Part shown: in pieces, positions 6,867-60,068 of the stretch
Layout of the letters: every line of letters begins with the position of its first letter
Position numbering within the stretch: position 1 is the stretch's first letter
Assembly: GCA_028023455.1 (NCBI GenBank)
Contig: JAQFVV010000010.1
Location: forward strand, 3,534,001 to 3,598,000
Source: Epiperipatus broadwayi
Taxonomy: Eukaryota; Animalia; Onychophora
Direction: 5' to 3'
DNA length: 64,000 nt
Notes under the pieces: generated by a model
Database searches by the model: none
Seen by the model: the letters and a program-made list of their open reading frames with translations, nothing else
Told to the model about the DNA's origin: nothing
Translations under genes and position numbers: made by a program

Positions 6867-8067
6867 TACACAGTTTCTAAACCAATTGAACACTAAAATT
6901 ACCAATTTAGATTTTCAAAATTGGTGTATTACTGAGGTGTGGAATTTTCTTAAGGAGTATGTTGTAAATACAAGTAATGGTATTCTTGAGTTCACTAATA
7001 CAAAAATCCTCATTATTTCTGTGGCAATGATTATATTATAATTTACTTATTGGTTTAGTGAAGGTTCAAGCAGAAGTTTAATGATGGAATTATAATCTTA
7101 AAAATGATTTAAACTGCAATGGAGGAAAGCATTTGCTGATCATGATCAGTTTAAGTTTTTTTATATATTGAAAATAACACATGGATTTGAAACATAATAT
7201 CTTAATTGTATTAAATCAATGGATGACTCTTGTATAGGTTAAGGATTTTTTGATAATATCTTGAATGATAATACAAGGGTTCAGATGACTTTTTAATGAT
7301 ATATCTATCAGGATGTTTAGTAGATTGGGAATCCTTAGGTATGAACTTGCATGAGGTTATATAGTCAATAATAAGTCACATTGAAACTTATTAGATTAAA
7401 AGATTATAAATGTTTATATGCTTGGGAACCTAAATATAGATTAAAAATATTGTTTTGCAAAATCTAGCTGAGTTATCATGTTAAGCAGTTGGTTATTGGT
7501 AGAAATAATGTTAATATCAATAATTCTAATGGTAGAAAAAAAGCTAGTTGTAGTAATGAAAATAAGTATTTTATTTTAAAAAAAATAATAAATATTTGAA
7601 TGTACTAACTTGCTTGATGAACACTCCAAAATTTGAATGAATGAAAGTCAATGCTATAACTAGATGTAGCTGCTATTAGTAAAACTTTTTTGAAAAGAGC
7701 ATTGGATCAAAAGATAACTTGCTCTGTCTGTATATGTTTCTGTCTGTATGTCGAGATTTTTGAATTTTTAACAATCAAAAAAATCCATTCCCATTAGAAT
7801 TTGAACTTACATCCTTATGCTTCCCAAGAAAATTCATTAGTAACTGAACCAATAGAAATATTGTTTGTAGAATAAAATTGTCTTAATATTGATTTAACTC
7901 ATACTTAATTAATTAAATTAATTAAAAAAGAAATTATTTCACACTCAGCTGCCTACTATATATATACAATTTTAATGCACAAATCAGCGCATAACAGCAG
8001 AGCTTCTTCAAATTAAATCACAATTTATTATAAACTTAATATAAATTATAATACATAATAAATAATG

Positions 8068-8108
8068 CCCGATCGCTTTCAAGAGAACTTAGCTCTCATA
8101 ATCATGGG
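8068..8108 (-). ncRNA. Hammerhead-like motif, left arm of the palindrome (helix III mutated to AGCGAU)
   Basis: Mirror of 8341-8381 with one helix III substitution. Confidence 0.45.
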
Positions 8109-8340
8109 TAACAAAGAGTAAGCGTAACAAGGTTGCTATGTGTAAATATATGCAGATATATGTAAATTAATTGAACTATATGCGTAAATCTAATTAACCC
8201 ATTTCTAAGAAATGGGTTAATTAGATTTACAACCCATTTCTAAGAAATGGGTTAATTAGATTTACACATATAGTTCAATTAATTTACATATATCTGCATA
8301 TATTTACACATAGCAACCTTGTTACGCTTACTTTTTGTTA

Positions 8341-8381
8341 CCCATGATTATGAGAGCTAAGTTCTCTTGAAAGCGCTCGGG
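8341..8381 (+). ncRNA. Candidate minimal type I hammerhead ribozyme with A3-U8 core variant
   Basis: CCC AUGAUUA U GAGAG CUAAGUU CUCUU GAAA GCGC UC|GGG: helix I CCC/GGG, helix II 5 bp, palindromic helix III AGCGCU, cleavage predicted after 8378. Confidence 0.55.
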
Positions 8382-8659
8382 CATTATTTATTATGTATTA
8401 TAATTTATATTAAGTTTATAATAAATTGTGATTTAATTTGAAGAAGCTCTGCTGTTATGTGCTGATTTGTGCATTAAAATTGTATAAATTAATTAAAATA
8501 AAATAAAAAATATGTTTAATGTTTATAAAATAACATTTATAGAAAAATGATTGTAATGATGTCATATTGATAATACTGCACATGAACAAAGATGATTAAA
8601 AGAGCTTGATGAAAATTTTTTTTTATTTAAGTTGAAATTATATGTTTTATTTATAACTA

Positions 8660-8912
8660 AAAAGTAAAAAAATAATATTTTTTTAATAAAGCTTTTATGA
8701 AAACAGTCAACTAAAAAGTAGAAAAATAAAGTAATCAAACTAAAAAACATATGTCATTTCATAAAAGCACTTGAGGCTATAAAAATCAAAAAGGTCTTAA
8801 ATACTTTTATAAAAATGAGATTACTTTTTTATTTTTCTACTTTTTAATTGGCTATTTACATAAAAGCATTATTTAAAAAAAAATTAATATTATTTTTTTA
8901 CACTTTTACTTT
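8660..8912. mobile_element. AT-rich MITE-like foldback element (same family as 38633-39081)
   Basis: Imperfect long TIRs (gcttttatg..actaaaaagtagaaaaata / tatttttctacttttta..cataaaagc) shared with the 38.6-39.1 kb copy. Confidence 0.6.
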
Positions 8913-9340
8913 GAGATCAAATAAACAGATTTAAGGACTAATATATATTCAGACATAGTTGTTTTTCATGATTTGGTTTGCATAGTCATTCAAAAATGCA
9001 TTTAACTTTTTGTTTTTATCTATTTTTCTTCTAAAATTTGAATGATTATACTAATTTATGAATGAGTGTTAATAATAATGATGATAGTCTATAGAAAATT
9101 ATTTGATTCCTTTGACTAAAATTTAAAATGTGATCATTTTTTTAACTATTAATAGTTTGCTATTCTGAAACTTTCTGTCATTTTGCTTTTTTTAAAAAAA
9201 ATTTGCTTATAATCTCATTTATGCTATATTGTTTTTAATAGAGGCAAAACTCTCTATACAGTAGTGCCACTCAGTGTAAGCCAGAGTAATCAGTGGATGC
9301 AAAAAGGGCTATATTAAAATCCCTATCTAGTGCCTACTCA

Positions 9341-9392
9341 TCCAAGATCCCCAGACTAGTTTATAGCTTGTAGCTTTCATCAGCAAAGACCC
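9341..9392 (-). ncRNA. Decayed type I hammerhead motif (GAAA changed to UAAA)
   Basis: Minus strand: GUCUUUG CUGAUGA A AGC UACAA GCU A UAAA C UA G UC|UGGGGAUC. Confidence 0.55.
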
Positions 9393-10187
9393 TTGGACCT
9401 GAGAGTCCTGCACCAAGATCTTAGAATCTAAGGCAATCCTCTAGCAACTATCTTTTATTTTTTTAGCTAAATATAAAGCTATAGATCCAAAGTAAAAATA
9501 CAATTATGTTTTCAATCCAAGCTCATTCACTTGTATAGTCATATAGATCTGAACCCATTTCAGTATCTATATGTTTTGGTGTCTTTATTGTATTATTAAC
9601 CATAGTCAATATCATCCTACTTGGTAGGATTGGTATTAAACCATTAAATATCACATGACCATCATTCCCTATGCTTACACATGTTGTTATAACAGAGGCA
9701 TTACTCTCCATACTGTAGTGTCACCCAGTGCAAAACAGATAATCAATGGATGCAAAAAATTTTGTGCATAAAATCCCTATATAGTCTGAGGATATTGGAT
9801 GAGAATACACTAGACAGGTATTTTATGCAAAAAATTTCTTGCAACCATTGGTTACTCTGTTTTGCACTGGGTGTCACTACTATATGGAAAGTTTTGCCTC
9901 TGTTATGATAGCTTATATAAGTATAGGCAATGGTAATCATATGTTGCTTAGTGGTTTAATACCAATGGTGATTATTGTTATTAAAGAACCAAAGGCACCA
10001 AAATGTTTAGATGATGAACTGGGTTCAGACCTGTATGATTATACAAGTGAATGAGCTTGGATTGTAAATATTTTTGTGTTTTCATTTTGGACTCATAGCT
10101 TTATAGTTAACTAAAAGATAAAAGGTGGCTTCTAGAGGGTTGCATTAGATCTTAAGATCTAGGTGCAGTGTTCTCCGATCCAAAGCT

Positions 10188-10230
10188 TTTTCACTGATGA
10201 AAGCCACAAGCTAGAAACTAGTCTAGGGAT
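10188..10230 (+). ncRNA. Candidate minimal type I hammerhead ribozyme
   Basis: UUUUCA CUGAUGA(10194-10200) A AGC CACAA GCU A GAAA C UA G UC|UAGGGA; intact core, palindromic helix III ACUAGU, cleavage predicted after 10223; helix I is weakened and unpaired As flank helix II. Confidence 0.65.
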
Positions 10231-11029
10231 ATTGAATAAGTATTGACAAGATAGATTTTATGCACAAAGCTTCTTTAATCTATTGACTATTCTGTCTTGC
10301 ACTATGTAGCACTACAGTATGGAGAGTTTTGTTTCTGTAGTAACAGCTTGTGTAAGCATAGAGAATGATAATCATGTGATGTTCAGTGGCTTAATATATT
10401 GTGGTTTTTTTTAATTTGATAAAAAAAATTATTATTATTATTTGCTTGAATACATAATCATAAAATAAAATTGTTTATAGTGTTCTTTAAAATATTTATT
10501 AACTAAATATGTGTAGCAAGTTCTCTACCAAAGATTAGATGAAAGTAACTACACATTGTGGTTAACCAACACCTGACCACCATTCAATCTTGTTTTTATT
10601 TACTATAAAGTTATACTTTTAAATAAATCATAATAGACATTGATCCTGTGCAGTTTTACAGAGGCAGATTCAAAACCAAATGCTTCAAGATCAAAACCCA
10701 GCTGAATAGCAAAAAAAAAATCCAGTTTAGTTAATTGAATAGATCTACTGTTCTAATCTGCCACCAGGGTGCTCAAACATCACATGAACTCTCAAGAGAC
10801 TAACTATACACTTATATAATAAGCAATTTATAATAAAAATGATTCTTTCATTTTTTATCTATAAAAATGCAACAGTCCACTATAACTTTTATGTTATAAG
10901 AAGAGATCTTGTTATTGAAAAATATAAAACATTTGAATTGGTTATGTTTAATAAACTGCAAGATGTAATTGGTAGAATTATTAATTTGAAAACTAATTTT
11001 AAAAAAATATAATTTAATTGGTTTCCAGA

Positions 11030-11260
11030 TTTACACTTTGCTGCTGATTATGCTATTCTTGCCAAATCAAAAAATGATCTACACAATATATTTAATGCTT
11101 TAAATGCAATCTTTGATTTAAAAATCTCTTAGGTATTTTTTCAGTCAAAGATAAAAGAAAAATCGTCAACAACTTTTTAGTTTATGCTATTATTTTGAGA
11201 ATATGAAACATATTTAGATACCTATATATTCAGCTACTACCTATGTTCTATTTTATCTTT
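11030..11260 (+). mobile_element. LINE reverse transcriptase fragment
   Basis: Translates LHFAADYAILAKSKNDLHNIFNAL...LKIS, matching the FADD-region consensus. Confidence 0.5.
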
Positions 11261-13389
11261 AGTTGAATCTTTAAATACTGCTTTGTCATCATGAAGTAAT
11301 ACAGGGATGACTAATCAATAAATTTTAAGACTTTTGATTTGGAAAAGGGATTTATCATAATATTACTATGTAATTGATAAATTCAACATGTAATCTAAAA
11401 CTGCATTACTTTTCATTGACAGTTTTTTTCTGAACTTTTAGTATTACTTGTCTTTTCAATTTTTTATTTTGTTTTGAGAAAGTGGGAGGTGACGAGGAGG
11501 TAGTGTGGGGGTAAAAATAATTCAATTGTAAGTTTTTATGTTTTATTTTGATTTCTCATAATACTACCTAATATTGACTTAGAAATTAATTTATGTATAA
11601 TTTCAAACAACTTATTTATACTTAACAGTTTTGTTTCAAATTTTTATTTTTATTATTTGACTTTGAAATTTTTAAATTTCTTATTTGGTTTTTAAAAAGT
11701 GAGGAGGGTGTGGATGCAGTCAATTGTAAGTTTTATTGACTCTTATGAAAACAATAATTACTTTCAAAATTAAAACTTTATTTACACCTTAGAGTAGATA
11801 CAAAAAAAATCAATGATAGCATAAAATTATGTCAATAAGAAAGTTTCAACATATACATATAAATGTGGTATGCAAACCATGTATATAGAAAAATCAAAAG
11901 TTGTATTAGATCAATAACATAGTCTCAAGAGCTGCATAAGAAAATTATGATAGGTAATTAATGCAAGTATGAAAGAAACATAAATAAATATAAATAAAAT
12001 CAAAGATTACACTAATGCCTTAAGGCAGTGCGTTATATGCATAATTAGCTAGGAATATAAAGTAAGTCAAACCTATGTATAAGGTTTGGAAATTCCATTG
12101 ATTAATGACTATCCTGGTCCAAAGAGTGAGGATTATAACAATATTTACAAATTGATATAGGTAAATTAATTATACAGTATGGAACTAATGCAAAGTTTAT
12201 GTATTAAGTATATAGGATGTATGAAAGATATACATAGTTAAAGTTTAGATTATTCTTAGGTGAAAGATGGGATATATTATTTATTCAGTGGATGGGAGAA
12301 AGTTCAAGTTTTAGGCCTAGAAATACATGAATTAAGTTTCTAGCTTCATCTGGCTCCAGGTTTGGTCAATTAGCTATGAAAACAATAATTGTCAGTTACA
12401 TTTGATACAAATTACAAATAAAACAATCCAAACAAAAATGAACTGGCTGGCTTTGAAACAACAACAAATTAAAAGAAGATTTAAATGAAACTTTTTATTT
12501 GGTGTTCCACATCCCAGAAATTGTTTTCTTTTTATTAAATACATACACACAAAAAATCATTGCCCTTTATTTGGGCCCAGTAATTTGGCAACCACAATGT
12601 GGGTGGGCAATGCAAAATTGCTCTAAACTCTCTCTTAACTTTCTTTTCTCCGTCATAGATGATGTGAGATCCAAATAAAGAATGTAAGAAGTTTTTTTTT
12701 ACTTTTTAAAAAATAATAATAGTAGTAAAATAATTTAAATGAACAACTCAGTTTTATACTTACATTTCTTTTTCGAATAAAAAACATTTTAACAATATCA
12801 ATGAAGAACACAAATTTTATTTTAAAATTAATTTCTTAAAAAAAGTATTTATTTTCTGTTCTATTTTTTAACTATTTACAAACATAAATTTTGGGTACAG
12901 AAAATACATTGAATAATTTATTAATTAGTTATTCCAGTATTATTTCATGATGTAGATGCAATGTTTTAAAGAAATATTTAAACATAAAATAGAATATTGA
13001 TAGACAAGTACATTGGTAACTTAATTTAAATAATTTCATAGAAAAGTGGATTTGGATTTAGAAGTATCTCATTATAGTGATACTGAATTCCTTTTGGAGA
13101 CCTTAAATGGAACAAGTAGGCAAATTTCCAATGTTTCATTCCAAACATTCTTGTTGCAACTATTATTACTTTGTGATTATTTATATAGTATATGACCATG
13201 GATGGACTGCTCATCAATACACATTTGTCAGTGTGGTGAGTTTATTGGCTTAAGCTTTCTTCTTAGTTGCCTGATAGCTCTTGAGTGAAATGTCAGTTGG
13301 GCTTTCTTGAAGGCAAAAGTGAATGTGTGTGTGAATGGTTTTTTAAGTAGATATTTACAATTATGAGATAGAAAAATAACTTATAGTCT

Positions 13390-16285
13390 TATTTCCAGGA
13401 GGCCATAAAGTCAATAGCCAAGGCAGTAATTAGCAGCTGAAGGTGGAGAGTGCTAAGAATATCCTGATTGTGAACCTGGTCTGCCATATGATAATCTTTT
13501 ATTTCTGTACTTATTCAACTGCAGACAACTTTCAAGTGAAGGAAGACTGCAAGAATTGGAAGAACTGTCTAATATAAAATGGGACATTATTGGACTTTGT
13601 GAAATTAGAAGAAAATGTGAAGAGACAATAGATTTAAAAAGTGGTTATATACTATACTACAAAGGTACAAACAATGGAAATACAAGTGGAATATGATTCA
13701 TAATAAATAAAAAGTGGAAGAATGACATTGTGAAGATTGATGAAGTATTGGGCAGCATAGTAAGATTATTTATTCAACTTAATAGCAGATATCAAATGCA
13801 TGTAATTCAGGTTTATGCACAACAAGTTCTCAATGTGATGAAGAAGTAGAGGATTTTTATATGAATGTACAAAAATATTTTGTTCAAACCAAAGAACCCT
13901 TTGTAATTATCATGGGATATTTTAATACTAGAATTGATAAACAATTGAAAGTTGAAAATGCTGCATGCAAATTTGGTTATGGTGATGAAATGAGAAGGGC
14001 ATAGGTTTGTGGAGTTTGCAGAAAAAGAAAAACTTTATATTTTGAATTATTTTTTTGAGAAAAACATTAAATGTAAATGGACATTGAAGCATCCAAGTGA
14101 TTGTATAGCAGAATTGCATTATATTTTGACTAACAAAAAATATATATTTGAAAATTGTAATGTCCTTAATAAATTCAACACAGAAAGTGATTATCAATTA
14201 GTGAGATGTAAAAGACATGTTAATGCTAAACTAGAAAGAGAAAAATTATTAAGAAAAACAATATTCACAGTTGATATTCCTAAACTTCCAAAACATTCCA
14301 ATGAATTTAAATTAGAACTTACAAATCGTTTTCAAATATTAACAGATTTTGAATATGATTCAGATTTGAATGAAATCAATATAACTAATACACTTTTAAA
14401 AGCTGCAACAAAGATAGCTGGTACAAAAAAGCAGTAATTCACCAGTAAAATTCTACTGAGACAATTTATGAAGAAAAAAGGAATATAAAAAGGTTGTAAA
14501 AATAATGCATTAAGAGGGATTGAATATCTCGAATTTTGTAAAATGGTATGAAAAGAGTTGATAATGATATAAGAAAGTATAATTGTAAACTAGTAAGAAA
14601 AGCTGTAGAAGAAAATAAAAGTTTCAAGAGTGTAAAACAACATTTTGGTATTGGTTAGGAAACATATCTGCAATAAGAAAAAAAGATAGAACTATTACTA
14701 AAATGAAAAATGATATTATGAAATATATAGAAGAGTTCTATTAAGAATTATATAGCAATAAAGAGCAACGAAAAGTATCTTTTACAACTATTATATTTTC
14801 TGAAGTACTCAGAATTTTAAATGAAGTGTGACATGCAATTAAATTTATGAAGAAAAGAAAATATTCAAGTAATGATAGAATTATAATTGATATCTTAAAA
14901 GAAGCAGGTGAAGAAATACAACAATTTTGGCAAAATAATAAAGATCTATCAGATGATTGGAAGAATGCAGTATAATATTAATATTTTTAAAAGGTGATTA
15001 AGAAGATACTGGAAAATATAGACTTATCAGTTTTTCATCAGTTATATACAAAATTTTTACCAAAATAATTACAACTCATCTACAGTGAACTTTGGATTTT
15101 AACAAATCAAAGAACAATCTGGATATAAAAGTAGTTTTAGTACAGTAGATCATATCCAAATATTGAGAGAAGTTATACAAATGATCAATGAATATGTGTT
15201 GCCATTATACTTTAGATTTGTAGACTATGAAAAGGCATTTGGTTCTATAAAGCTTTTCTTTTGTGAATGAAGCATTAGATCATCAAGGTATAGATCCAGT
15301 GTATTGTCTTACTATGAAGAATATAAAAATGCAATAGCAACAATTAGATTACATAATGATACTAAAAAGATTAACATCGAGAAGGTTGTATGACAGGATG
15401 ACTCAATATTTCCAAAACTTTTTACAGCAGTTTTGCAATAAGTATTTTGTGGATTAAAATTGGAAGCTAGGGAAATAAAATAAAAAATGGAGATTATTTA
15501 AGTCGTTTAGATTTTGCAGATGATATAATTGTTTCTGCAAATAATGCTTTAAAGCTTTTTAAAATGTTGCAAGAGTTATCAGATGAAAATAAAAAAGAAA
15601 AATTAAAGGTAAATGTTAAAAAGACTAAAGTAATGTTCAATGGATTTAAAAGAAAAAAATGAAGACTGATAATGATGAGTTAGAAGAAGTTAAGAATTAC
15701 AAATACCTTGATCAGATTATTATTACAGATGAAAACATAATGAATGAAATTAATCATAGAATTAAACTTGATTGAAGAGCTTTTGGTAGAAATAATTTAA
15801 TATTAAAAGAAAATATGCATATGTGTTTGAAAAAGGAAGGTTTCTAATAAATTTGATTTACCAGTTCTTACTTTTGGATCTGAGACTTGTCACTTAACAG
15901 GAGAGAAATACAGAAACTTCAGATCATTCAACTGAGTATGGACAAATTCATGTTAGGAATAACAAGAAGAGATCACAAAAATAAAATACATGGGTAAGAG
16001 AGCAAACAGGTTCTATTGACATCATTAAAAAAATTAAGCGACTGAAGTGGAGTTAATCTGGATATATTCCTAGAAGAGATAATAATAGATGGGCAGTTAA
16101 AATGTTAAACTGGATTCCAAAAGATTGTAAAAGTCCTAGAAAGAAACCACATATGAGGTGAATGGATGAAATAAGAAAGTGTGCTGGTGTGATGTGGAGA
16201 AGAGAGGCTAGAGATTGGAGATGAATTAAATTTGGAAAAACCTTTTTCCTGCAGTGATGAGAATGAGATTGATGATAGTAATGTA
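13390..16285 (+). mobile_element. RTE-clade LINE, near full length, with a disrupted APE endonuclease + RT ORF
   Basis: NCRQLSSEGRLQELEELSNIKWDIIGLCEIRR endonuclease start; FVDYEKAF, FADD and KYL RT motifs; RTE-type 3' end (cctgcagtg..gattgatgat); many stops and frameshifts; supplied ORF 14009-14437 is a piece of it. Confidence 0.92.
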
Positions 16286-17330
16286 AGACATTCTGCCAAG
16301 TTGATTATATAAAAGTAAAGCATGCAATTTCCTATTAACAAAACAAAAAGATTCTAGAAATTTTCATTTAGAGATGTTCTATAAAATTCTAAAATTACAA
16401 GATCACAATACTATTTGGTATGTTTTCCAGCTTTCTGGACTTGGATAATATTATAAAGGCATATATGTATTGAAATTGAGTAACTGAAGCAAATGAATAG
16501 CAGCTGACTTCTTACAAATGTATTTAATCAGAGGAAAAACAAATCCCATTTATAGTATTCTAAAAAAGTGTATATTAATTTCTTTCTACTGGAACAATAT
16601 GATTTTGTTAGAATGTACTAGAAAACTAAATTAGGCAATGTGTTGAAATCTTTCAGAAAGAAGTTTTCTGTAAAAGAAGGTAAAAGACAATATTGTAAGA
16701 TACCTTTAATAAGTGGATTAAAAAGTCTGTCAATAGAACAATAGATGTGTGTTTGTGCTCCACTAATTAATTTCTATAGTAGTCAAAAAACTAATCTATT
16801 TTTTCTTCCTATTAGAATGGCCATAGCTCTTAACGGTTATGACGTGGTGGCAATTATCAATTTTCAGAGAAAAGCATTTAGTTAATAATGTTATATACTT
16901 AAAACGTCACATAGTTAACCTTTAAAAAAAAATTACTTTTTAAAAAAAAGTTATAAAAATTGCTCCCTAAACAGTACAAAGTTCAAGTAAAAAGTGATAA
17001 TTTTTTATTTTTTTACTTCCTGTTTATCTTTTACATTGTTGTGTAAGAGCAATCTATCGCACAGATGTTTATTAACTATTAGAAGAACAATACAATTAAA
17101 ATTAATATTTTAATTTTTAAAATATTGATGATTTTTTTAATATATAAACGATGTGAAAAGGAAAGATGGTGTCTTAGAATTAGGTGTTGTACCCTTGTCT
17201 CAACTTTATCCTTAATAATGGGTATTGCCTAAAGTATGGAGTTTCCTAGTGTGGGTTCATAATACCTTACGACTAGCCAACGAAAAATAACAATATAAAC
17301 AAACAAATAAGTAGTCAATGAGACAAACAG

Positions 17331-17580
17331 TCAATCAAATAATTTAGTTCGTAAATACCATTGTCCATAATAAGATAGGATAAGTAGTATAAATTTGAAG
17401 TCCATTTGCAAGAGAAAAGCAAATCTGGAATTACTCTGACAGTAATATACATTCAATCAAATAATTAAGTTCCTAAATACCATTGTCCATAATATGATAA
17501 GATAAGTAGTATAAAATCAAACTTCATTTGCTTAATCACATTAAGAACAGTGATTCATTAATCTGACAGTAACATACATT
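17331..17580 (+). repeat. Tandem duplication of a ~122-bp unit
   Basis: tcaatcaaataatt..taaataccattgtccataat..gataagtagtataaa..tctgacagtaa repeats at 17331 and 17453. Confidence 0.9.
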
Positions 17581-19559
17581 GACTACTAATTGAAGATTGG
17601 AGTCAGGATATTCAACAGTAAGTGACAAAAAGAAAGTGGAAAAGTCTGACATTCAAGATCACACCAGGAAGCTGTTAATGACATATAGTTAGACAAGCCA
17701 AAGTGGCAAAGGGTTATGTTTATGACATTCTTCCAATTAGATATGTTTGTAACAGCTGTACATTTGTCATCTTGCCAGTCTTAATAGACAATGAACTCTT
17801 ATAACTGTTATGATTATATTATTACGATAAATAAGATGCTATAAATGTTTTGATGTTATTTAAATTATATCTCAATTATTTATTAACCAAAACCACTATT
17901 TTCTGTAGCAAAATGTATAAATCCAACAATAGTAAGGACATCTCTCTCTTTCCATTTTACAATCAAATTACCAGTTGGACAAAATATAAGAAATATCTTT
18001 TTATTAATTCTGTATTTTGTCATCATGTAATTCAGAATGATAATACAAAACAACATCACAATTATTCTTTTACTTTTATAATTCTAAGTCATAATAATAA
18101 GTATGTAATAAAGAAATATATATATATATCAGTTTTGTAAGAAAATGAGAAGTATCAGAAAAGTCTTTAGTTTTAAACAAAATCAAATAGTTGATCCTTA
18201 TTAGTTGAAGCCATGCATTCATTAAAGATGGAAAAATGAAACTTGTAGAACTAACTGTGATATAAAAAACTGCTGAGAAAGAAAGATTACTATAATAAAC
18301 AAATCTATGGATGAATATATTACTGCAGAGGTTCATTCACATCTGATCTATTGTATCTATCAAAATAATTTATACCGAGTCTCATGGATAAACTGCTTTT
18401 TCAAAATGTCTGATTTTTGATAAATGCTGTGATATGGAAATATCACCAGTATAACTGGATAATACATGAGTAAAAGCATTTCACATGGAAAATGAATCAT
18501 TATTTACATTTTCTCCGATCATTAGAAAGAGTATAGTTGGTGTTGATCAAAATAAAAATTGCCTTCTGATTTTGAAACATGATAGTGATATTATCACTAT
18601 TTAGGAAGATAAGTTATAGTATTCTCTTAATGCAATCATCACTACTATGCATGGCCACATTATACTTACAGATTATTTGAATGTGTTAGAGAAACAATCA
18701 ATTTCAAGAAATTGTTTTCAGCTAACTCTATCATATTTCAGATGATTGTATTCCAATTTATTCTTATACAATGTCATGTACTAGTTTCATAGTTTTATTT
18801 AGCATAGTGTTCAATTATTTTATCTGACTCTTTATAGACAAGCAAATTCATTTACTTTCATCTAGTATCCATGGATTTTCATGATAATTATATAATCTAA
18901 TGTAGATTAATTATTTTTAATAAAGATGATTTTTGAATCAATTTTTTTTTGTTATTGTGCTTCTTAAACTCATTGATATAAAGGCTCCCTTGAAATATCT
19001 GGAAACATTCATAGCACCTAAAAAAAAAAAAAATTAATGCAAGCATATGTCATCATTAGACAATTTTATTATATTTATATTTAGTTTATTTAAATAAATT
19101 TCTTTATTTATATTTTTATTATAACACAAAATACTTAAAAAATTACAAATATTGCAAAGATCATGAAATATGAAACACAAAACTTATTAATAATAATATG
19201 AACAAAAATAAATAATATTTTAATGTAATAATGTGTTTGAATACTGCTAAACAAAAAATCGATATAAGATTAAATATTTGACATTGCAATTCTTAGATTT
19301 TTTTTCTTAAGGTTTTCATTGATAAACAAGATTTATGCTTACTCTTAATTAGTAATCTTTGCAGAGAAAGATTCAGTTCATTTATTTTCTTGAAAAAAAT
19401 CCTTCAGGTAAGAAAGCAAACATATCCAATTAGATCAGAAAAAATAGGTCCTAATGTGGGTTTTTTACTAAGAAAAAAAATTGTAATTCATTTTTTAATA
19501 TTAAAACTTTTTTTAAAACTTTACTTTTTTTAAAACTTTACTTTTGTGTAATATAAAAA

Positions 19560-20480
19560 AGATTTGTAATTGGATTCCATCTCTTGGCATAAAATTTGAA
19601 TGTTTACTTTTTATGTATTTAACTATTGTATAAACTTCTGATAACATTTTACTAAGTAATTCTTCCATGTATTGAAATACTAAGTTTTTTCTGTGGATAA
19701 TGCAATAAATATGTCTTGCAATTGATTAAACTTTACGTCATAGGTACAATCCCAATGCCCTTTTGCCATTTGTGCTCATTTTCTATAAAAAATATTAAAC
19801 TTTTCAAATATATCTCTTTCTTTAGTTGCACTGGAAAGATTACTGCAAAACAGCATTTGTTTATTACTTTGAAAATTATATAGGTATCTGACAAAAATCA
19901 TTAAATTAGATCATTTGTATTGTAAATTGATTATCAAATTGGGTGATGAATATAGTACTTTGCTTGATTTATGATAATAAAGTAAACATAAAATTATTAG
20001 TAATGCTATCTATTCTTCTTTTAACTGTAACCTTGGACACAGTATTTTTTTTTAAGCGTTTGATATTTTCAAACCATGTATATTTAGCAAAAATTTTATT
20101 GCTACTGGTAAGATGAGATCTTTTCCAAAAGTATAAGGCTTTTGTTCTTTTTTTAATTAATAACGAAATTTTGAAAGAAGCTTTTACTAATTTGTCATTT
20201 TATTATTCAATCTTTCCTTAAAAAAATTTAATTATTTTACTCTTATATTTATTGTGCACATACAATTATTTAACAACTATTTCTGGAAGATTACATACAT
20301 AGGCTGTAAGCACATTATATAAAGGCAAAAATCTATATTTCAAATAAGAAGTATCATAATTATGAATTTTCCCAAATTTTCTATCTCTTGCCACTCAGTG
20401 TTGAAAATAATGTGGATAGATCTGCCCATTTTGATAAAATATGAGATACTGTTGTTTTCAACTTGAATTCTTTGGTGTTT
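19560..20480 (-). mobile_element. Second Buster/ZBED5-like hAT transposase remnant
   Basis: Minus strand YTFGKDLILPVA, VSKVTVKRRIDSI, NLMIFVRYL, LFCSNL, YCIIHRK and IVKYIK in colinear order; heavily disrupted. Confidence 0.7.
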
Positions 20481-20810
20481 CGTTGTTTTTGATTGACTTA
20501 CTTTTACACATGTATTTTTATTAGCCATTTATCCATCCTAATGTTACATTTTTAATGAGGAGTTATCAAATACATACACTAGTATCAAGATACTCATTAC
20601 AAAAATGAAACTAGTAAACTGTACAAGTAAGGATATTTCCCAGTGTTTATAATGCTCATATAAGATTTGAAATACAGGCATTCTTATACCTGGAACTTAA
20701 TTGTAAATATAGGGGATTTGAACTCAGACTTTCAAGCAACCTTCAACTATCCACACTATCTCATACTACTGATACACATTACCACAAACATGTAGAAAAG
20801 ATAAATAATC

Positions 20811-20854
20811 ACCAATATACACATCTTATGCAGAACCAGCCCTCATCAGTTGGT
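20811..20854 (-). ncRNA. Decayed type I hammerhead motif, left arm
   Basis: Minus strand ACCAA CUGAUGA GGGC UGGUUCU GCAU AAGA UGUGUA UA|UUGGU. Confidence 0.6.
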
Positions 20855-21382
20855 CCAGATTATCATCTCCAACACATATGTATAATCAGTGCTCAGTTTA
20901 TATTAAGATAGCAAATCTTTATAGTTTAATGGACAGGCTTCAATCTACTCCAACCTCCAACTCTTCAGCCATCCATACTATTGAAAATCTGATGACAGAA
21001 TGCCCAAATCTCATGCTGATGCCAATATTGTTGTCATGCCCATGTTTACCTCAAGTCACTCTGACCCCTCATGTATAGGACAATATTTATTTAAATATTT
21101 CAAATCTTACAGATTAAGCCTGTATTCTGCCCATCCCTCTTCTATGTATTTAAATTGATGTTTTCCTATACATGAGGGGTCAGAGTGACTTGAGGTCAAC
21201 ATAGGCATGATAACAATATTGGCATCAGCATAGGATTTGGGCATTTTATCATCAGATTTTCAATGGCATGGATGGCTGAAGAGTTGGAATAGATTGAAGC
21301 CTGTCCATTAAAGTATAAAGATTTGCTACCTTAATATAAACTGAGCACTGATTATATATGTGTGTGGGAGATGATAATCTGG

Positions 21383-21426
21383 ACCAATTAATGAGTGCTG
21401 GTTCTGCACAAAATACATATATTGGT
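21383..21426 (+). ncRNA. Decayed type I hammerhead motif, right arm
   Basis: ACCAA UUAAUGA GUGC UGGUUCU GCAC AAAA UACAUA UA|UUGGU; the two-arm consensus gives a canonical motif. Confidence 0.6.
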
Positions 21427-22423
21427 GATTATTTATCTTTTTTACATGTGTGTGGCCATGTGTATCAGAAGTATGAGATATTGTGGATAGTTGAAGGTTG
21501 CTTGAAAGTCTGAGTTCAAATCCCCTATATAATGGTCATATAAATGGATTGTAAAATAAGTGATTTTTAAAATGTATTTGTATGCAAAATTAAATCTAAT
21601 TATCTACTTTCAATTTAAAACTTTGAAAATTATTTTTGTGGCTCCCTTAACAAGAACCACAGCCTCTTGAGAACCCATGACTGACAGTTTGTGAAGCTCT
21701 AATCTAGATAATGTATTGACAATCTAGGATCTAAGATTTGTTTTTTTTTTATTATTAGGCATAGTAATAGAGCAATAAATAATAAGCCTAATTTATGAAA
21801 ACATTTTTCAGAAAATATTTAAACTGCTGAATCATCCATTGATTTCTGTGCAGTATGTGATGGTTAAAAATCTTTCTCAAAACTGTTATCATAATTTTTT
21901 AAATTATAGTCCACAATTTCCCCCCCCACACACACACATATATTGTGAAAAGACTGCATAATTTGTTCAAAGTTTTCTTTTATACAGCAATAGTATTCCA
22001 AGTGTGAGAAAGAAAAAGTTCAAAATCAAAGCTTTCTCATTTCTGATTTCATATTTTGTTTAAATATACCTAAGAAAAAATTCCATGAAATATCTATTTA
22101 ACAGCACATAATAATGTCTACTCTTTTCAAAACATTTGTATCCCAAAATAATAGAATTGATGAATATGTGCATTGAAAAACTTTTTATCAGATTTTAAAT
22201 AAAATAAATAAATAATTGAATAGTTTATTACTTGAGATTTCATAAAAAGTTTGAGCACCAAAAATGAACAGGATTGAATTGCGATCTTTAAGCTCCAGAG
22301 TCTGCCATTCAAAGTGTGACAAGAAGCAGTAACAAATTCCCAGTAATGTTAATAAAATGTATTGCTTGATTGCACACCTAATTATTTAATTTGGAAATTA
22401 TTTTACTATTATATTAACTAAAT

Positions 22424-27250: not shown

Positions 27251-29869
27251 TTGTTTCCTTTTTTTAATAGAAGAGAAAACTAAGAATTTTAAGTTTTTTT
27301 CTTAGTAAAAGGAAAATAATAATTTTTTTTCTTTCCCAACAATAGCTTGTGAATGCCCTTCCAATGTTATATCAAATCCATGATTTTCTATGTATGGATA
27401 AATTGTTACAATTATTATTATTTTGTTTTTATTATGCCTTTAGAGATTTTTTTATATATGATGTGCCCACACTTATATTTATTCCATGTTTGTTCATTTT
27501 AAATAGATTGATAATCCTCTTTACTCCTACATATGCCCTACAATTGATGTTTTTTTTTTCAACTTCATGAATACAAATTAAACTAAATCCTAATCTTAAT
27601 TTATTTCATTATATTTATATTAAAGAATCATTACGACATAATTATATTTTCAATCTTGCATGTAAATTATCACATTTTATTTCTCTTTTTGAGATTAATT
27701 ATTTAATTTGAATCATTTATATCATAACTTAATAGTGATTACAATTTGATGAAAATAGTTTTGACATTCTATCTAATCTGTATTTAATTGTTGCTATTTT
27801 TTTGGCATGGAGATAATGACTAATAATAATCATATTTTGAAACAGTTTCCTGCTACAATTTTTAACACAAGAATGTTATTATCAATTTTTTTTACTTTTT
27901 GTTAGTGCATCTTTTATCTCAACTCTGCCACAGCACAAACCACCCACCAGCTCAGTAACAAGTTATTAGTTTGTTGTTTTTTTCTGTAATCATATTGTGA
28001 AAGTTTGAGATATAAGACAAGTACTTAAGATTACCAAGAATATGTTTAGAAATTTTCTCATTTTTACAATATATATATAATGATAAAAAAACAAACAGAT
28101 ATAACCAGTAAGAATTATGTATACTACTTAAAAGTTTGCTTTTAGTAGAAAATTGGTCGCAATATCTATTTTTCTATTCTAAAAGATGAAAAAATTATAT
28201 GATGCTGATTACTTTATGTTTTATTATATTTTCAATCAAATCAAGATCCCCTTTCTGGATATTTAAATAAAAATCTCATCAAACAATCAAAGGATTGTTA
28301 GTGTAAAAAATGAACTTCTTATAATGTTCTTAATAGTTTTTTCCAGATCTAACATTAATATCAGCTGGATTTGATCTTTCTTAATGTTACTTGATTCTCA
28401 CCAAGATTCAGGATAACCCATGACATTGAATTCATCTGTTTTATAAATGGAATTCAACAGCACTAACCTATATATTGTACCATATATATATGTTACAAGT
28501 GTGTTGGCATTTGGTAATATTTTAAAGCTAAAAAAATAAAAATTTGAAATAATTCAATAAACACTATTTAGTTTTTTTTATTAGTATAATTTATTTTTAC
28601 ATATGTACAGTGAAAGTTATTTGTGTATTGGGGTTATCTATTTAATTGAAATAAAATTAAAAAATTGGAAGGAATAGAAATACATGCAGATTGGTAATCC
28701 AGATAAACAAAAGAAAGTAATTCCAAATGCAAGTGATTACCATCAGAGTAATATCCTTCTAACAATAACTAAATATGGCACTGAAGGAATCTATAAAAAA
28801 GAACTTTGGAACTAGAAAGCAAAAAGGAATGTACAAGATTATCAACTTGTATTCTGATAAGAAAACAAAGATGAAAATATATGCACAGAAATCTCAAAAC
28901 TAGTCATGATATAAAAGGGGCAACTTTGGAGCTGTGTCTTTGGCTGGTGATTTTCTTAGGTCCTGAATCGAGTGAGAGGACAGGCGGGACAATTACAGTT
29001 TTCTTGTCCTCACAACCACAATAAAATGCCTCCATTCAGGACTGCTCATGTGCTGCACCAATTTGTCAAGCATGAGTAAAAACCTAGAACATTTGCTGAC
29101 ACTTTCTCACATGAAAATGTCACCAGAATGGAACTAAAGTTAACTATAGAGCCCTTTGTAAAAAAGACTATGCATGGTACAATAATCAATGATCTACATA
29201 AACCTGAGGAACTTACCATTAAGATATTAATCATACAATAACTTGTATCTGATTAAATATGTGCACAAACTAAACACTAACTATGAGCTTATTGTATCAC
29301 TAAAGAGACATTCATTTTTCCAATTCTTCAATACACCTCATTGATTGCTTCCAAGAGGAAACTTAAGAAGAAAATAGTAATACAAACTGTTTTAATTATT
29401 TGATTAACATTATTGTCTGGATGTGTGTGTTCCTTTCATTTTATTAACATTATCATCTAATACGTTCAATATTTTAATTAGTTTGTTTTATTCTGTAATT
29501 CAATACTAGTGCTATAAATGCATAAATACAAAGCTAATATTTAATATCTTATTAAACCATAGGCTGAGCACTTTCAAGAGTCATGGCTCTCATAATCATA
29601 GCTCTTTATGAAGTAACAGATTTCTAATGTTATGCAAATCTATGCAAAGTTTAAATATTCCATTTCCTGGATATAGAATAACACGCTTCCTTTCTGTTAA
29701 TGGCATTGCTATCTATTGTGATAAAGCAGGCCTCTTTTTATCTTTTTTTCTCAAATCATTTCTCTCTCTGCAGACTAAGCTGATTATTTGTGTTTCACAT
29801 GGATGTACTGCAAGCTTTTGGTGCTGTGTGAAAATGGAATTGTGTGCTGGATTGGATTGTGCATTAATA

Positions 29870-31990
29870 TATTGTAACGATATATAAATATGTCGTTACA
29901 TTAATTTAAAATAAAAACTTAAAAGTTCGCAAATAAAAGTAAAAAACTAAACGCTAAAATTAAAATGTTTGTTAAACGTATATACATTCGCACAGATGCC
30001 AAACTTTAAAAATATTTTTTTAAAAAAAAAAACAAATAAGTATTTGAACGTACTTTTTTTATAAAAAAAAAAAGAAGTACAAGATTTAAAAATAAAAACA
30101 GGTATTAATTAATGTAATCTGTAAATGGAAATGATTGTTTATGAATTATCGAAAACCAAGCTAGCCTTGGGCTCTTGTATGATTAAAATGATCTGATGAA
30201 AGATAGATAAGAAAATAAAGAGAAATTAGCTTGACCAATGGAAGCACTAAGCCTTGGCTCGGACCCTAACGAAAGTGATGGATTAGGGACGTTTTGTTAA
30301 TTGAATCCGTGTGGATAATATAAAAAGGGAAATACAGTTTTTTCTACAGTTCCAGCGTTGTGTGTTTGAGAGGTGGTAGGACGCACATACCACACTCTCT
30401 ATTTAAAAAGGAAAAATGAAAAGACTGTGATACCTTGAACCAGCTATTGCCATCTCCAGAACATTATCTTCCAATGGAGGCATCGCGGGAATTAAAAGCA
30501 GAAACCTGGACTCTTCTACCGTGAGCTATGAACTTTACAAATTAACAACAACCAAAAAAGTAATTAAGAACTTTCGTCATTGATTTTTTTTTTTTAAAGA
30601 TTCAGCTAATTTAAATTTTAAAATGAACTCTTATTTGATTTTCAAATTAATAATTGATTGTTTAAATTTATATAGTTAAGTTTTGCTAAAATCATTTCCA
30701 TTTTATTATTTTTATTTGTAGTAATATTTATTGTAGAAATTATTAAATGCATTACATTTAAGTTGGGTATAGACGTTGCATAGATTCGTTAGCGGTTGAT
30801 TATGTTGTGGTTTTCACAGTCGATTGGAATATATAGGTCAACGATGTTAATGCGGGCATCTTACGATGAATGCCATGGGGCCTTGTGTATTCCCTGTTGC
30901 AATTGACGTTATCGATTGACTTTGTATTTTGATCGGTTGTGTTTAATTTGGAATGTTTTGACCGTGGAATCTGTGCAGCCGATCTATACCCAACATTTTT
31001 AAACAAATCTGTGCGAACGTATTTAAATGTTAAATTTAAGTCGGGCGTCAATGGCTATATAGTTTTGTAAAGTTATATTAAGGGAGGGTAATCTTAGGTT
31101 ATTCGTTTCGTGGTTGAATTGGCTCAATGGATTGGATATATTTGTGTAATTAGTAGATGTAGTATGAGATCCGCTTCAGGCAGGATTGCATATATACGCC
31201 ACACACCTTCTGTTTGCCTATGGATGGGTTTGTAAGTTGGCAGAAGACCGCAGTCCATTCCTATGGAGTTTTTTGTTTATTGTTCTACTCGCCAACAGAT
31301 GTCACATTCCTGTTGGTGGAGAGACCATGTTTTCTCTAATCTACTTACTGATCAGATGTACTTACCTGACAGTATAGTATTTTGTGTTGTCGTATCATGC
31401 TACATTGAATACATGAATGTATCAGATGGATTGGCGCCAGTTTGGTTGCGAAATTTGTTGCCTAAGGTTAAATCAGGGAAGACTATTTTCTTTTCAAATG
31501 CAGATCTATGTAGTCTATTCATACTTGACTATCTAAATAAAATATTAAACTCATTGAAACTTAGTTAAATGTAAAATTAAAAGTTAATATAAAAATCTAA
31601 AATGTTAAACTTATTCCTCAAATTAGAATGATTTTATATGTGCGTAAATAAATATTTTTATGTGTTAATTTCTGGCAGTGGCTTTTATTCTTTTATATTT
31701 AAGATATAAAATTTATATTTTATTTATCTCTGCGTTCCACTGAGCTAGTGACTTGGGCTAACGATCGGAATATTTAAATAAAGTGGAATCTTAACAGCGC
31801 GTATCTGCCTACTCTATAAATTTTTCTAGGTTTAAATGCCTAGATGGCGCCTTGTAGAGCAGATATCGTAGTTTGCAGTTAGATTCGATTTTCACTTTCA
31901 TTTCGATCGTTATAATATGAATATTTATGTTGAGATAATCTAGTTTCCAGTGATGTTTTGATTTCCCTATAGTATTGAATTACGGAATAT
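29870..31990. promoter_or_regulatory. CpG-rich island, probable unmethylated promoter region
   Basis: About 55 CpG counted by eye in 2.1 kb versus about 4 in bases 1-2100; contains CCAAT (30235), TATAAAAA (30319), CTAGATGGCGC (~31841; CTCF/YY1-like) and strong splice donors on both strands. Confidence 0.6.
31366..31460 (-). other. Possible first exon of an unidentified minus-strand transcript (5' boundary unknown)
   Basis: Consensus donor CAG|GTAAGT at 31366/31365 inside the CpG island; could encode MIRQHKILYCQ. Confidence 0.3.
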
Positions 31991-50800: not shown

Positions 50801-51846
50801 GCACAGAAATTTCCATATTGGTTAGATATAAAGCTGTCTATTCATTTCAATATATCAATTATAAATTTTGACTTATGCTTGCATACACCTTATATCAACA
50901 AAAAAAAGTTTATTTAATAATATTTATAGATTAAAGATAATCTAGTGATCCATATAATAAACATACATCAAATGAAGCCATAATATATATAATTAATATT
51001 TTAACAAAATCAAAAGGTTTAAAACAAATTAAGAAAAACTTGATATTTCTTGTAATTATTTGCCATAAATTAAGATACCTTATGATAAAAGCAGTCTCCA
51101 AATCAATCATTAATCTGAGAGGTGCATTTTCTTTATATAATTTAATATACACAAAGAAACATGATAATAACATAACTGAAATGTAAATCTTCAGGTATTC
51201 TTTTCTTGTATATGTTTTTTCCTATATATGGGCATAAAACAACATTAATAAATTTATTTATCATTATTTTTAATTATAATTGTCATTTTTTTTCAAACTT
51301 CAATTTATAGTTTTCTGTTCAATTTCACTGTCATACACATCATTATCAAATAAAATAAATCTATTTCTTTTATTCTTCTTTATGCAAATAACCCTGATAT
51401 CACACAACATCAATTAAAATTATGAATTATTGTGATCCACTTTTAATAATCCTGAATTATTAATCCCTTATAGTTATGACTTGTTTAATTTGACAATTCA
51501 TAAAAATAAGCTTTTTCAATATCTGCAATCTCTGAGAGTATTTTTCCGATCATCTCCATAATCAAAATTTTAATGTATATTTAAACTCATTTGACAAGTT
51601 CATATAATAATTACATATATCCATACTAAGCTCTTTACCTGTTTATTTGGCCAAAAACTTAAATTTATTATTGTACCAGGAACCTTCTACATTGTTTCAT
51701 ACTTTACCACATTGCACAAAACATTATTTACTGTATCAGGATTCTACTTCATATCCTCATAATACAACATTCTACCTTTAATATGTAAACTTAAAATTAA
51801 ACATAGCTCACTGTATATGTAAACAAAGAGAATAAGTCACACACAC

Positions 51847-56116: not shown

Positions 56117-56490
56117 AGGATCGTGGTGGCTATGATTGTTAAAGAGCCAAGGACACCAAAATGTATGGGTGCTGAACTGAGTTCAGACCCATAAGACTAT
56201 ATAAGCTATTGAGCTTGGATTGAAAATATTATTGTGTTTTCAATTTCATTCTCATAGTTTTGTAGTTAAATAGAAATAAAAGATGGCTGCTGGAGGGTTG
56301 CATTAGATCCTAAGATCTAGGTGCAGTGTTCTCAGATCCAAGGCTCATCACTGACAAAGGCCACAAGCCAGAAAGTCTGGGGATGTTGAATGAGTAGGCA
56401 CTAGATGGGGATTTTATGCACAAGCCTTTTGGCATCCATTGATTACTCTGGTTGGCATAGGGTGGCACCACTGTATAGAGAGTTTTGCCT
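56117..56490 (+). repeat. Dispersed 5'-truncated copy of family A unit with a decayed hammerhead (56345-56384)
   Basis: Aligns to 9960-10335; CUCAUCA CUGACAA A GGC CACAA GCC A GAAA GUC|UGGGGA. Confidence 0.9.
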
Positions 56491-58974: not shown

Positions 58975-59545
58975 ATTGTATAAATGTTGTTAGCAATGAA
59001 CCATTTTCTTTTTTGATCATTTCATTCTGCACATACTACTTTAATATTATGTGGATTGAAACTGCCGCCAGATTCCATTTCATGTTCCAGAAACACAGAC
59101 TTCACATTAGATCTTTCTTTGCATGGTAGTAAATATACTTATGCTGTGCTAGTCTGGTGTCACTGTTAGTGCATGATTCCCCATAATAGATTGCTCTACA
59201 ATCAGTTTCATTGCAACTGATCTTGTAAACAATCTGGAGGGCCTGGTCTGGAGGCAACTTGTCCTTCATATTATTTAGAGGCTTGTTTAGGTTTGAAGGA
59301 ATTTTGAAGTTGACATTAAATATGTCAGAACACATATTCTTTAAACATTGTGATAACCCAGGCATAAAGAGAAAAGTTATCAATTTAATTGTATTCTTAG
59401 AAGCTGGAGGATGGGAATTTATTCTGGAGTAGAATGTTTTAAGTATTCTAAGTAAGCTATTGTAATTATAGCCTATCCTGACCAGGTCTCTAATTTAGCT
59501 TTCAATTTTACTTTTCTGATCCTTTCCAAACATACATAATTTTTG
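58975..59545 (-). mobile_element. Penelope-like element fragment (RT C-terminus, linker and GIY-YIG endonuclease)
   Basis: RIGYNYNSLLRI..FMPGLSQ..VNFK..KDKLP..IVYKISC..DC..IYYGES..RLAQHK..FLEHEMESG..FNPHNIKV. Confidence 0.82.
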
Positions 59546-60011
59546 ATTTTTATAAAGAAAGCATTTGAGACCTGCCATTTTGTGTGAGATGTATGTGATT
59601 GAGGATATATTGTACTATGTGCTTTTCTCTTAATAAATCTCAGCCAACAAGTTTATGCATTATGAATATGATCTTCTAGGTTGAAAACATTGCTCAGCTA
59701 GTTATTGTTTAACTGAAATAAGTCTAATCTTTTCTTTAGAAGTGAATGAATGTTATTAATAGAAATACATAGTAAAAGAAAAGAAGTAAACCATTATAGA
59801 GTTATAGAGATTAAAAATTCTTTAGAAAAAGCTATGGTATAAATAGCATGCAGCAGAAATCAGTTGTGTTCATCTTTTCTTTCTTTTGACTGACTCCTGT
59901 TTGTGGTGATCATCAGTAGAAGACTTCCAACTAATATGCAATTAATAAAAATCTTTCCCATGCATCAAGAAAACTCCATTCATTGTTGTTTATACTTAAT
60001 TCAGCTTAATA

Positions 60012-60068
60012 ACACTTGTGTAAGCATAGAAAATGGTGATCATGTGATGTTTTTGGTGGCTCTAAACC
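60012..60068 (+). repeat. Short fragment of family A unit
   Basis: acacttgtgtaagcatagaaaatggtgatcatgtgatgtt matches 10343-10385. Confidence 0.75.

Follow-up and report, generated by a model that had tools for sequence, protein, structure and literature searches.

Palindromic repeats with hammerhead motifs in the genome of the velvet worm Epiperipatus broadwayi as probable integration products of Penelope-like elements

Palindromic repeats that carry a hammerhead-like ribozyme motif in each arm raise the question of what is being copied, the palindrome as a whole or the arm alone. Three such repeats, here called E1 (7925-8489), E2 (9240-10397) and E3 (20661-21529), lie close together in a 64,000-nucleotide stretch of the onychophoran Epiperipatus broadwayi (NCBI GenBank assembly GCA_028023455.1, contig JAQFVV010000010.1, positions 3,534,001 to 3,598,000 of the forward strand), which we refer to as the window and whose coordinates are used throughout. 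A first-pass annotation made from the letters of the window had proposed a class of non-autonomous fold-back ribozyme retroelements with a fixed tail of ~110 nt. Our analysis points elsewhere: each palindrome is very probably the product of one integration event by the machinery of Penelope-like elements (PLEs), with E1 a truncated autonomous PLE, and E2 and E3 short non-coding units that possess the same 3′ module.

Inverted-repeat detection resolves E1 into two arms of 259 nt each (7960-8218 and 8231-8489; 98% complementary) and E3 into two sets of arms, 20707-20954 with 21283-21530 (92%) and 20956-21097 with 21147-21288 (91%), while E2 is a composite of inverted blocks (79-81%) across 9236-10397. 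Since the arms are complementary and BLAST finds no similarity between E1, E2 and E3 (E ≥ 0.05), the description of three unrelated inverted repeats is borne out; direct reading of the sequence likewise confirms an outward-facing hammerhead-like motif with a small palindromic helix III in both arms. The element boundaries first proposed hold for E2 but not for E1 and E3, whose left arms run 38 and 46 nt further out.

Copy structure across the genome

Throughout the genome the arms of all three families occur singly, in tandem and head to head, with 3′ ends that are fixed and sharp and 5′ ends that are variable, which supports both the retroelement nature and the defined 3′ tail suggested at first pass. 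Every family has two alternative 3′ ends, and the long form exceeds the short one by ~38 nt in E1, 45 nt in E3 and 58-65 nt in E2. The E1 extension ranges from 38 to 48 nt, and its sequence is found again beyond one end in many genomic copies; the E1 left arm of the window, its 38-nt extension included, is 99% identical over 289 nt to an oriented reference copy (L069).

Paired copies are almost always arranged head to head with their 3′ ends outward, and the arms abut with an overlap of 0-4 nt. The inner junctions vary from locus to locus and are shared only by L038/L043 and L074/L081, pairs that overlap in contig coordinates (C191, C12453) and represent the same insertions; one locus per pair was left out of the counts. 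One long and one short end are present in all 11 complete dimers of E1, in 15 of 19 of E3 as scored by script, and in 19 of 24 of E2; by eye, the E3 exceptions are due to BLAST over-extension into AT-rich flanks or to complex arrays. Direct repeats of 6-10 bp flank the E1 dimers at other loci, and repeats of 9-19 bp flank the dimers of all three families in the window. The targets are AT-rich and often (ATA)n. Many E1 insertions lie within (ATA)n/(TAT)n microsatellites (L066, L070, L079, L082, L090).

The outward 3′ ends, the varying junctions and the target duplications therefore argue that each palindrome represents a single integration event and not the copied unit. The proposal that the palindrome itself is mobile is not borne out, because the junctions differ and the same units are found singly and in tandem.

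The 5′ ends of the units, scored in 69 copies of E2, cluster at monomer positions 179-192, adjoining the putative distal start site of reverse transcription, with no peak at the predicted cut. A junction at the cleavage site was considered as a rule and rejected: the E2 dimer of the window, with both arms reaching ~546-550 nt, is the sole case among these 69 copies.

Coding and non-coding families and their hammerhead motifs

A first look at the genome yields ~1000 candidate copies of E1 with 98-99% identity and identical boundaries. In most copies conserved coding sequence is found upstream of the 254-nt unit, and the open reading frame (ORF) it forms has its stop codon 21 nt within the unit. 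In two loci this ORF is uninterrupted over at least 507 aa; it contains YVDD and VYNISC...YYGET, and matches RVT_1 with 32.9 bits (cut-off 29.6). A genome search returned at least 85 scored copies with frames open up to 772-793 aa, and the open-frame copies fall into two subfamilies of 97-100% and 83-85% identity. The nearest Atlas clusters consist of animal proteins with HTH_animal, RVT_1 and GIY-YIG domains; PF01541 is present in 23-47% of the members of these clusters, and the motif VYNISCPENNCMASYYGETKATLSTRLSQH is visible in the E1 C-terminus. Because of the conserved ORF with RVT_1, the long open frames and the PLE-type Atlas neighbours, E1 is identified, as far as sequence can tell, as the 3′ end (last codons and 3′-untranslated region, UTR) of a young autonomous PLE. 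The non-autonomous nature that had been proposed does not hold for E1, since its arms belong to a coding PLE; the link to PLEs and retrozymes drawn in the same proposal is supported by E1 as a PLE 3′ end and by the retrozyme traits of E2 and E3.

Other fragments of PLE ORFs occur in the window at 29481-29871, 58956-59584 and 50913-51218, all on the minus strand, and share 34-62% aa identity with the C-terminus of the E1 ORF; for the C-termini of related PLE ORFs in the window and in loci fetched from the genome the identity is 34-55%. One PLE copy ends near 29660 and is followed by AUGAUUA-U-GAGAG/CUCUU-GAAA-GUGC-UC, with the 17th position at ~29566; its family ends 76-85 nt past the predicted cut.

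E2 and E3 are high-copy families, with at least 4669 candidates at ~82% identity and at least 7436 candidates at ~90% identity, respectively. Both are non-coding (longest stop-free stretches 74 and 84 aa) and form discrete units of ~375-435 nt. The monomers in tandem copies measure 437 nt in E2 (copies of 739-1052 nt) and 467 nt in E3 (a copy of 926 nt); single units and inverted dimers are commoner than tandems. These sequence traits fit animal non-LTR retrozymes or non-autonomous PLEs. The 3′ end of E3 (GAGTTCAAATCC) is tRNA-like in appearance and has no match by ARAGORN. The first-pass annotation had suggested comparing arm consensus sequences with PLE 3′ ends: for E1 the arm is such an end, and E2 and E3 have no similarity to the nine PLE 3′ ends compared.

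Word depth was available for contigs of uncertain type (RNA or DNA) from four public runs of three coded organisms. In E2 the depth reaches tens of thousands over window positions 9190-9450 and 10050-10310, which comprise the hammerhead and its flanks, and far exceeds that of the rest of the unit. This part is common to very many copies, or to several families and species.

The support for the hammerhead motifs is to be found only at the level of families. A type I descriptor (the CUGANGA and GAAA boxes, helices I and II with no fewer than 4 and 3 bp, respectively, a short helix III, and any base but G as N17) finds no intact hammerhead among the window copies, all of which carry mutations in the core or in a helix. 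The same descriptor, whose background in shuffled sequence is 0.02 matches per 64 kb, matches dozens of times in the loci of E2 (~95 kb) and of E3 (~98 kb), so that the motifs of these two families exceed chance. Of the searches that had been recommended, Infernal/Rfam came out negative for the window and for genomic loci with intact motifs, and the type I descriptor negative for the window copies and positive for the E2 and E3 family loci.

From 58 copies, the E3 ancestor can be reconstructed as ACCAA-CUGAUGA-GUGCUG-GUU-CAGCAC-GAAA-UACGUA-UA↓UUGGU (the arrow marks the predicted cut). This sequence has the complete conserved core of a canonical type I hammerhead in its minimal form; its two CpGs have turned into TpG or CpA in the majority of copies, both window arms among them. 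The majority form of E2, CCUCA-CUGAUGA-A-AGC-CACAA-GCU-A-GAAA-CUAG-UC↓UGGGG, is a near-canonical type I hammerhead whose sole departure is a basal A.A in stem II; in one subfamily the stem is a compensatory GGC/GCC, and in a related family its basal position is G.U. These two forms lend support to the earlier assignment of a minimal type I hammerhead with palindromic helix III.

E1 differs. Its motif, AUGAUUA-U-GAGAG/CUCUU-GAAA-GCGC-UC↓GGG, has the topology of a hammerhead with A3 and U8, and hence not the CUGANGA core. The E1 family yields no covariation of its own because its copies are all 98-99% identical. The 3′ UTRs of related PLEs keep the AUGANUA-U box, the GAAA and mostly the palindromic helix III, and helices I and II differ in sequence with pairing maintained in most. 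The box with its unpaired U is found at 8344-8378 of the window and at L029:2261-2315, L055:2507-2564, L025:2776-2833, L056:766-822 and L050:442-497; the A3-U8 core is conserved in the 3′ UTRs of at least five further PLE families, with L050 reading GUGAAUA. In the PLE hammerhead literature that we compared, we found no description of an A3-U8 core; PLE hammerheads are known that have an unpaired base ahead of stem II and, in Schistosoma Cercyon, a core that covaries to U3-A8 (PMC4209133). Since the core recurs in diverged PLE families with pairing kept, and in view of the Schistosoma precedent, the E1 motif is most likely a lineage-specific A3-U8 variant rather than the result of decay. In this genome a whole clade of PLEs, with its youngest and most active family, would then use an A3-U8 core instead of C3-G8.

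The distance between the predicted cut and the outer end is 108 nt in the E1 right arm, 108-109 nt in both arms of E3, 114 nt in the E2 left arm and 174 nt in the E2 right arm. Measured to the short end by family, it is 108 nt in E1, ~108-114 nt in E3 and 111-122 nt in E2. The values first reported for the window arms are reproduced, as is that of ~113 nt for a dispersed copy (56140-56492; 113-115 nt). Three other PLE families of the genome end 76-85, 74 and 71-82 nt past their predicted cuts and have longer alternative ends in addition. With three families at 71-85 nt, a universal ruler of ~108 nt from the ribozyme to the start of reverse transcription is ruled out, and the fixed tail length claimed for the class is not upheld. 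The distance is constant within a family and differs between families, and the agreement among E1, E2 and E3 is partly coincidence.

Integration model and rival explanations

The window architecture is a known signature of PLE insertion, and a good example of it rather than a new class. PLEs that contain an endonuclease are strongly 5′-truncated, form partial tandems, have an adjacent inverted 5′-truncated copy and a tail of 30-40 bp, often at one end only, and target microsatellites (Craig et al., PMC8557442). For an Anolis PLE it has been found in vitro that both target strands are cleaved and extended, that reverse transcription begins internally at two positions, separated by the length of the tail, with the hammerhead cut 85-92 nt upstream, and that ribozyme cleavage is dispensable for insertion (Frangieh et al., PMC11167929). 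The Anolis ribozyme depended on protein. PLE terminal repeats carry minimal hammerheads with palindromic helix III in opposite-strand pairs 100-700 bp apart (Cervera and de la Pena, PMC4209133), and animal retrozymes have been argued in a preprint to be non-autonomous PLE sequences (bioRxiv 10.64898/2026.07.22.740005).

By analogy, the element endonuclease would nick the two strands of an AT-rich target at points a few to ~15 bp from each other, and from each 3′-OH reverse transcription would begin at a fixed position inside the element RNA, close to its 3′ end. The two cDNAs would grow toward each other, halt at arbitrary points and join head to head; the product would be an inverted repeat whose outer ends are the element 3′ ends, with the target duplication flanking it. 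The 3′ module would place a hammerhead motif at a family-specific 70-120 nt upstream of a proximal start site, and a second start site 35-65 nt further on would yield the tail, on one arm only. The anatomy, the copy structure, the coding capacity of E1, the family-level motifs and the target duplications are observed; what we infer is that both target strands are primed, that there are two start sites, and whatever activity the ribozyme may have.

E1 resembles PLEs of the Penelope/Poseidon, Neptune and Nematis kinds in its single reverse transcriptase ORF with a putatively GIY-YIG-like C-terminus, and all three families share with PLEs the 5′ truncation, partial tandems, inverted truncated partner, one-ended tail, AT-rich or microsatellite targets, and a hammerhead motif at a fixed distance upstream of two (here putative) internal start sites. 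They differ in the length of the tail (38-65 nt, compared with 30-40 bp in published PLEs), in the distance from cut to start (108-122 nt, compared with 85-92 nt in the Anolis element) and, for E1 and its relatives, in the core (AUGANUA, compared with CUGANGA). The likeness to PLE minimal hammerheads (PMC4209133) extends to the short helix I, the palindromic helix III and the opposite-strand pairs a few hundred bp apart, and also to the unpaired base between position 9 and stem II in E1 and its relatives; at that place E2 carries an additional A, but it also has one unpaired before GAAA. The C3-G8 pair covaries to A3-U8 in E1 and to U3-A8 in Schistosoma Cercyon. With animal non-LTR retrozymes (PMC7229834), E2 and E3 have in common that they lack coding capacity, have a low GC content and number thousands of copies, as tandem monomers and dispersed units, with a type I hammerhead, a helix III of 1-2 bp with a palindromic loop, and target duplications of more than 4 bp. 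Unlike retrozymes, they are mostly single units or inverted dimers with PLE-type ends and not long tandem arrays, and the 5′ ends of their units lie near the putative distal start site rather than at the ribozyme cut.

Second-strand priming also underlies the twin priming of LINE-1, in which a 3′-OH of the second target strand primes a second cDNA and gives rise to an inversion with one target duplication. Both LINE-1 segments derive from one RNA and jointly make up one inverted or deleted copy. In E1-E3, unlike in LINE-1, both arms carry the element 3′ end and would start at two different internal sites.

A stricter version of this scheme can be envisaged, in which one arm always derives from the proximal site of reverse transcription and the other from the distal, tail-bearing site, the proximal arm usually extending further 5′. 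Primed by one target strand each, two reverse transcriptases would follow one another along a single RNA, the first setting out from the proximal and the second from the distal site, which would explain the single-ended tail. The idea draws on the strict long/short rule and on the arm with the short end usually extending further 5′ than its partner, which is so in 35 of 45 dimers (p = 1e-4; the selection of loci could bias this number) and, by our own estimate of significance, in 19 of 27 of a conservative subset in which the selected arm has the long end (p ~0.05). Arm lengths within dimers correlate weakly (rho 0.25, p 0.09). In minimum free energy folds of E1 and E3 the tail takes part in a long hairpin that encloses the short site; on a fold common to the 3′ tails they reveal nothing decisive. 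No statement of such a rule was found in the PLE literature compared, and we regard this coupling of arms as a tentative idea that is rather doubtful.

Several observations weigh against assigning all three palindromes to PLE machinery. The 3′ ends of E2 and E3 are unlike that of E1 and unlike eight other PLE 3′ UTRs, and no autonomous partner was found among them; this comparison covered nine PLE 3′ ends, and 203,743 first-look candidates, mostly unscored, suggest further PLE families. Most 5′ ends of E2 and E3 units fall away from the predicted cleavage sites, and cleavage therefore has no visible role in defining the inserted copies. GIY-YIG was not detected by Pfam or NCBIfam in the C-terminal 149 aa of E1. 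No window copy is predicted to be active. Words of E1 and E2 are present in the contigs of uncertain type from the four runs, which are silent on RNA ends and circles. Finally, Rfam finds no hammerhead in the window at gathering thresholds, in positions 7500-22000 at E ≤ 10 or in nine loci with intact motifs at E ≤ 10, returning spurious miRNA-hairpin matches only; since Rfam fails on the intact E3 motif as well, this result has no bearing on the question.

A class of non-autonomous fold-back ribozyme retroelements in its own right, with the palindrome as mobile unit and a fixed ~110-nt tail measured from the ribozyme, would account for three unrelated families within 14 kb having the same geometry, with 108-114 nt from cut to short end, and for head-to-head being by far the commonest paired arrangement. 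It is nevertheless highly improbable: inner junctions differ at every locus bar the same-contig overlaps, identical units are found alone and in tandem, E1 belongs to a coding PLE, three more PLE families end 71-85 nt past the cut, and the architecture has already been published for PLEs (PMC8557442, PMC4209133). Scarcely credible is the view that the palindromes are DNA transposons, either miniature inverted-repeat transposable elements (MITEs) or foldback elements, whose termini are long inverted repeats, and that the hammerhead-like strings arose by chance. The elements are indeed palindromic, AT-rich, high in copy number and flanked by short duplications, Rfam detects no ribozyme in them, and a true MITE-like palindrome lies nearby (8640-8910). 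Against this stand the unequal arms and variable junctions, the extra tail on one end, the derivation of the E1 arms from the 3′ UTR of a reverse transcriptase gene, and target duplications that range from 6 to 19 bp instead of having a constant length; the descriptor, moreover, expects 0.02 matches per 64 kb by chance, yet dozens of E2 and E3 copies match. In the neighbouring MITE family the whole palindrome is repeated (~1-261, on both strands), and E1-E3 differ in this respect.

Two further routes to an inverted dimer dispense with priming on both strands, namely the snapping back of a single cDNA and two independent adjacent insertions. Together they are very unlikely. The abutting arms with their 0-4 nt overlap are what a template switch would give, but a snap-back predicts equal arms that begin at one and the same site, and a flank copied in inverted orientation, whereas the arms are unequal, have long and short ends and are flanked by direct duplications. 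Independent insertions, for their part, are not expected to be head to head and abutting nearly always, or to have one common target duplication. Integration by PLE machinery, one event per palindrome, remains the best explanation.

Features of the window and their meaning

The features that make up the three palindromes, and the single E2 unit found elsewhere in the window, are collected in Table 1. The probable target duplication of E2 reads TATTGT..TTTTTAAT in decayed form; its match is imperfect because the insertion is old (~80% identity to the family). The E3 duplication reads TAATG[C/G]TCATA.

Table 1. Arms, hammerhead motifs and target duplications of E1, E2 and E3 in window coordinates
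Feature	Position	Strand	Description
E1 target-site duplication	7916-7924		AATTAATTA; second copy at 8487-8495
E1 left arm	7925-8213	-	5′-truncated PLE 3′ end (last codons and 3′ UTR); long form, tail extension 7925-7962
E1 mirror hammerhead motif	8071-8105	-	AGCGAU replaces AGCGCU
E1 right arm	8236-8489	+	254-nt PLE 3′ end; terminates at short site (...AAAATTGTATA, 8486)
E1 hammerhead variant	8344-8378	+	AUGAUUA-U-GAGAG/CUCUU-GAAA-GCGC-UC; predicted cut after C8378, 108 nt before short end
E2 probable decayed target duplication	9227-9239		TATTGTTTTTAAT versus TATTGTGGTTTTTTTTAAT at 10397-10415
E2 left arm	9240-9785	-	~1.25 monomers of the non-coding 437-nt hammerhead repeat; 3′ end of the short form at 9240
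E2 left-arm motif	9354-9383	-	UAAA replaces GAAA; predicted cut 114 nt from end
E2 right arm	9782-10397	+	E2 unit with long 3′ end at 10396/7; short site would fall at ~10331-10345
E2 right-arm motif	10194-10223	+	CUGAUGA..GAAA-CUAG-UC; helix I broken; predicted cut after C10223
E3 target-site duplication	20650-20660		TAATGCTCATA versus TAATGGTCATA at 21530-21540; 10/11 bases match
E3 left arm	20661-21097	-	Near-full unit from unit position 52; long form, tail 20661-20706
E3 left-arm decayed hammerhead	~20816-20849	-	CUGAUGA box 20843-20849
E3 right arm	21096-21529	+	Full-length 435-nt unit; terminates at short site
E3 right-arm decayed hammerhead	UUAAUGA at 21388-21394	+	AAAA replaces GAAA; predicted cut after 21421
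Single unpaired E2 unit	56140-56492	+	GGC/GCC helix II subfamily; core mutated (CUGACAA); short 3′ end 113-115 nt past predicted cut

Further short fragments of the E2 family lie at 2156-2296 and 60011-60052. The AT-rich palindrome at 8640-8910, between E1 and E2, has 73-nt arms of 79% complementarity and is a member of another family, of at least 1000 candidates, whose repeated unit is the entire ~260-bp palindrome, its ends being constant; it is MITE-like and contains no hammerhead motif.

The finding establishes no new kind of element. Its value lies in the annotation of a repeat-rich genome of 5.6 Gb, in which short palindromes of this sort are very probably PLE-type integration products and not MITEs, and one of them, E1, can be tied to a young and apparently intact PLE family. 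The many copies represent a natural data set for the poorly understood integration of PLEs, with target duplications, abutting arms and a long and a short end per event, and complement a single in vitro study (PMC11167929). The A3-U8 core common to several PLE families would, in addition, amount to a natural covariation test of the C3-G8 tertiary pair of the hammerhead.

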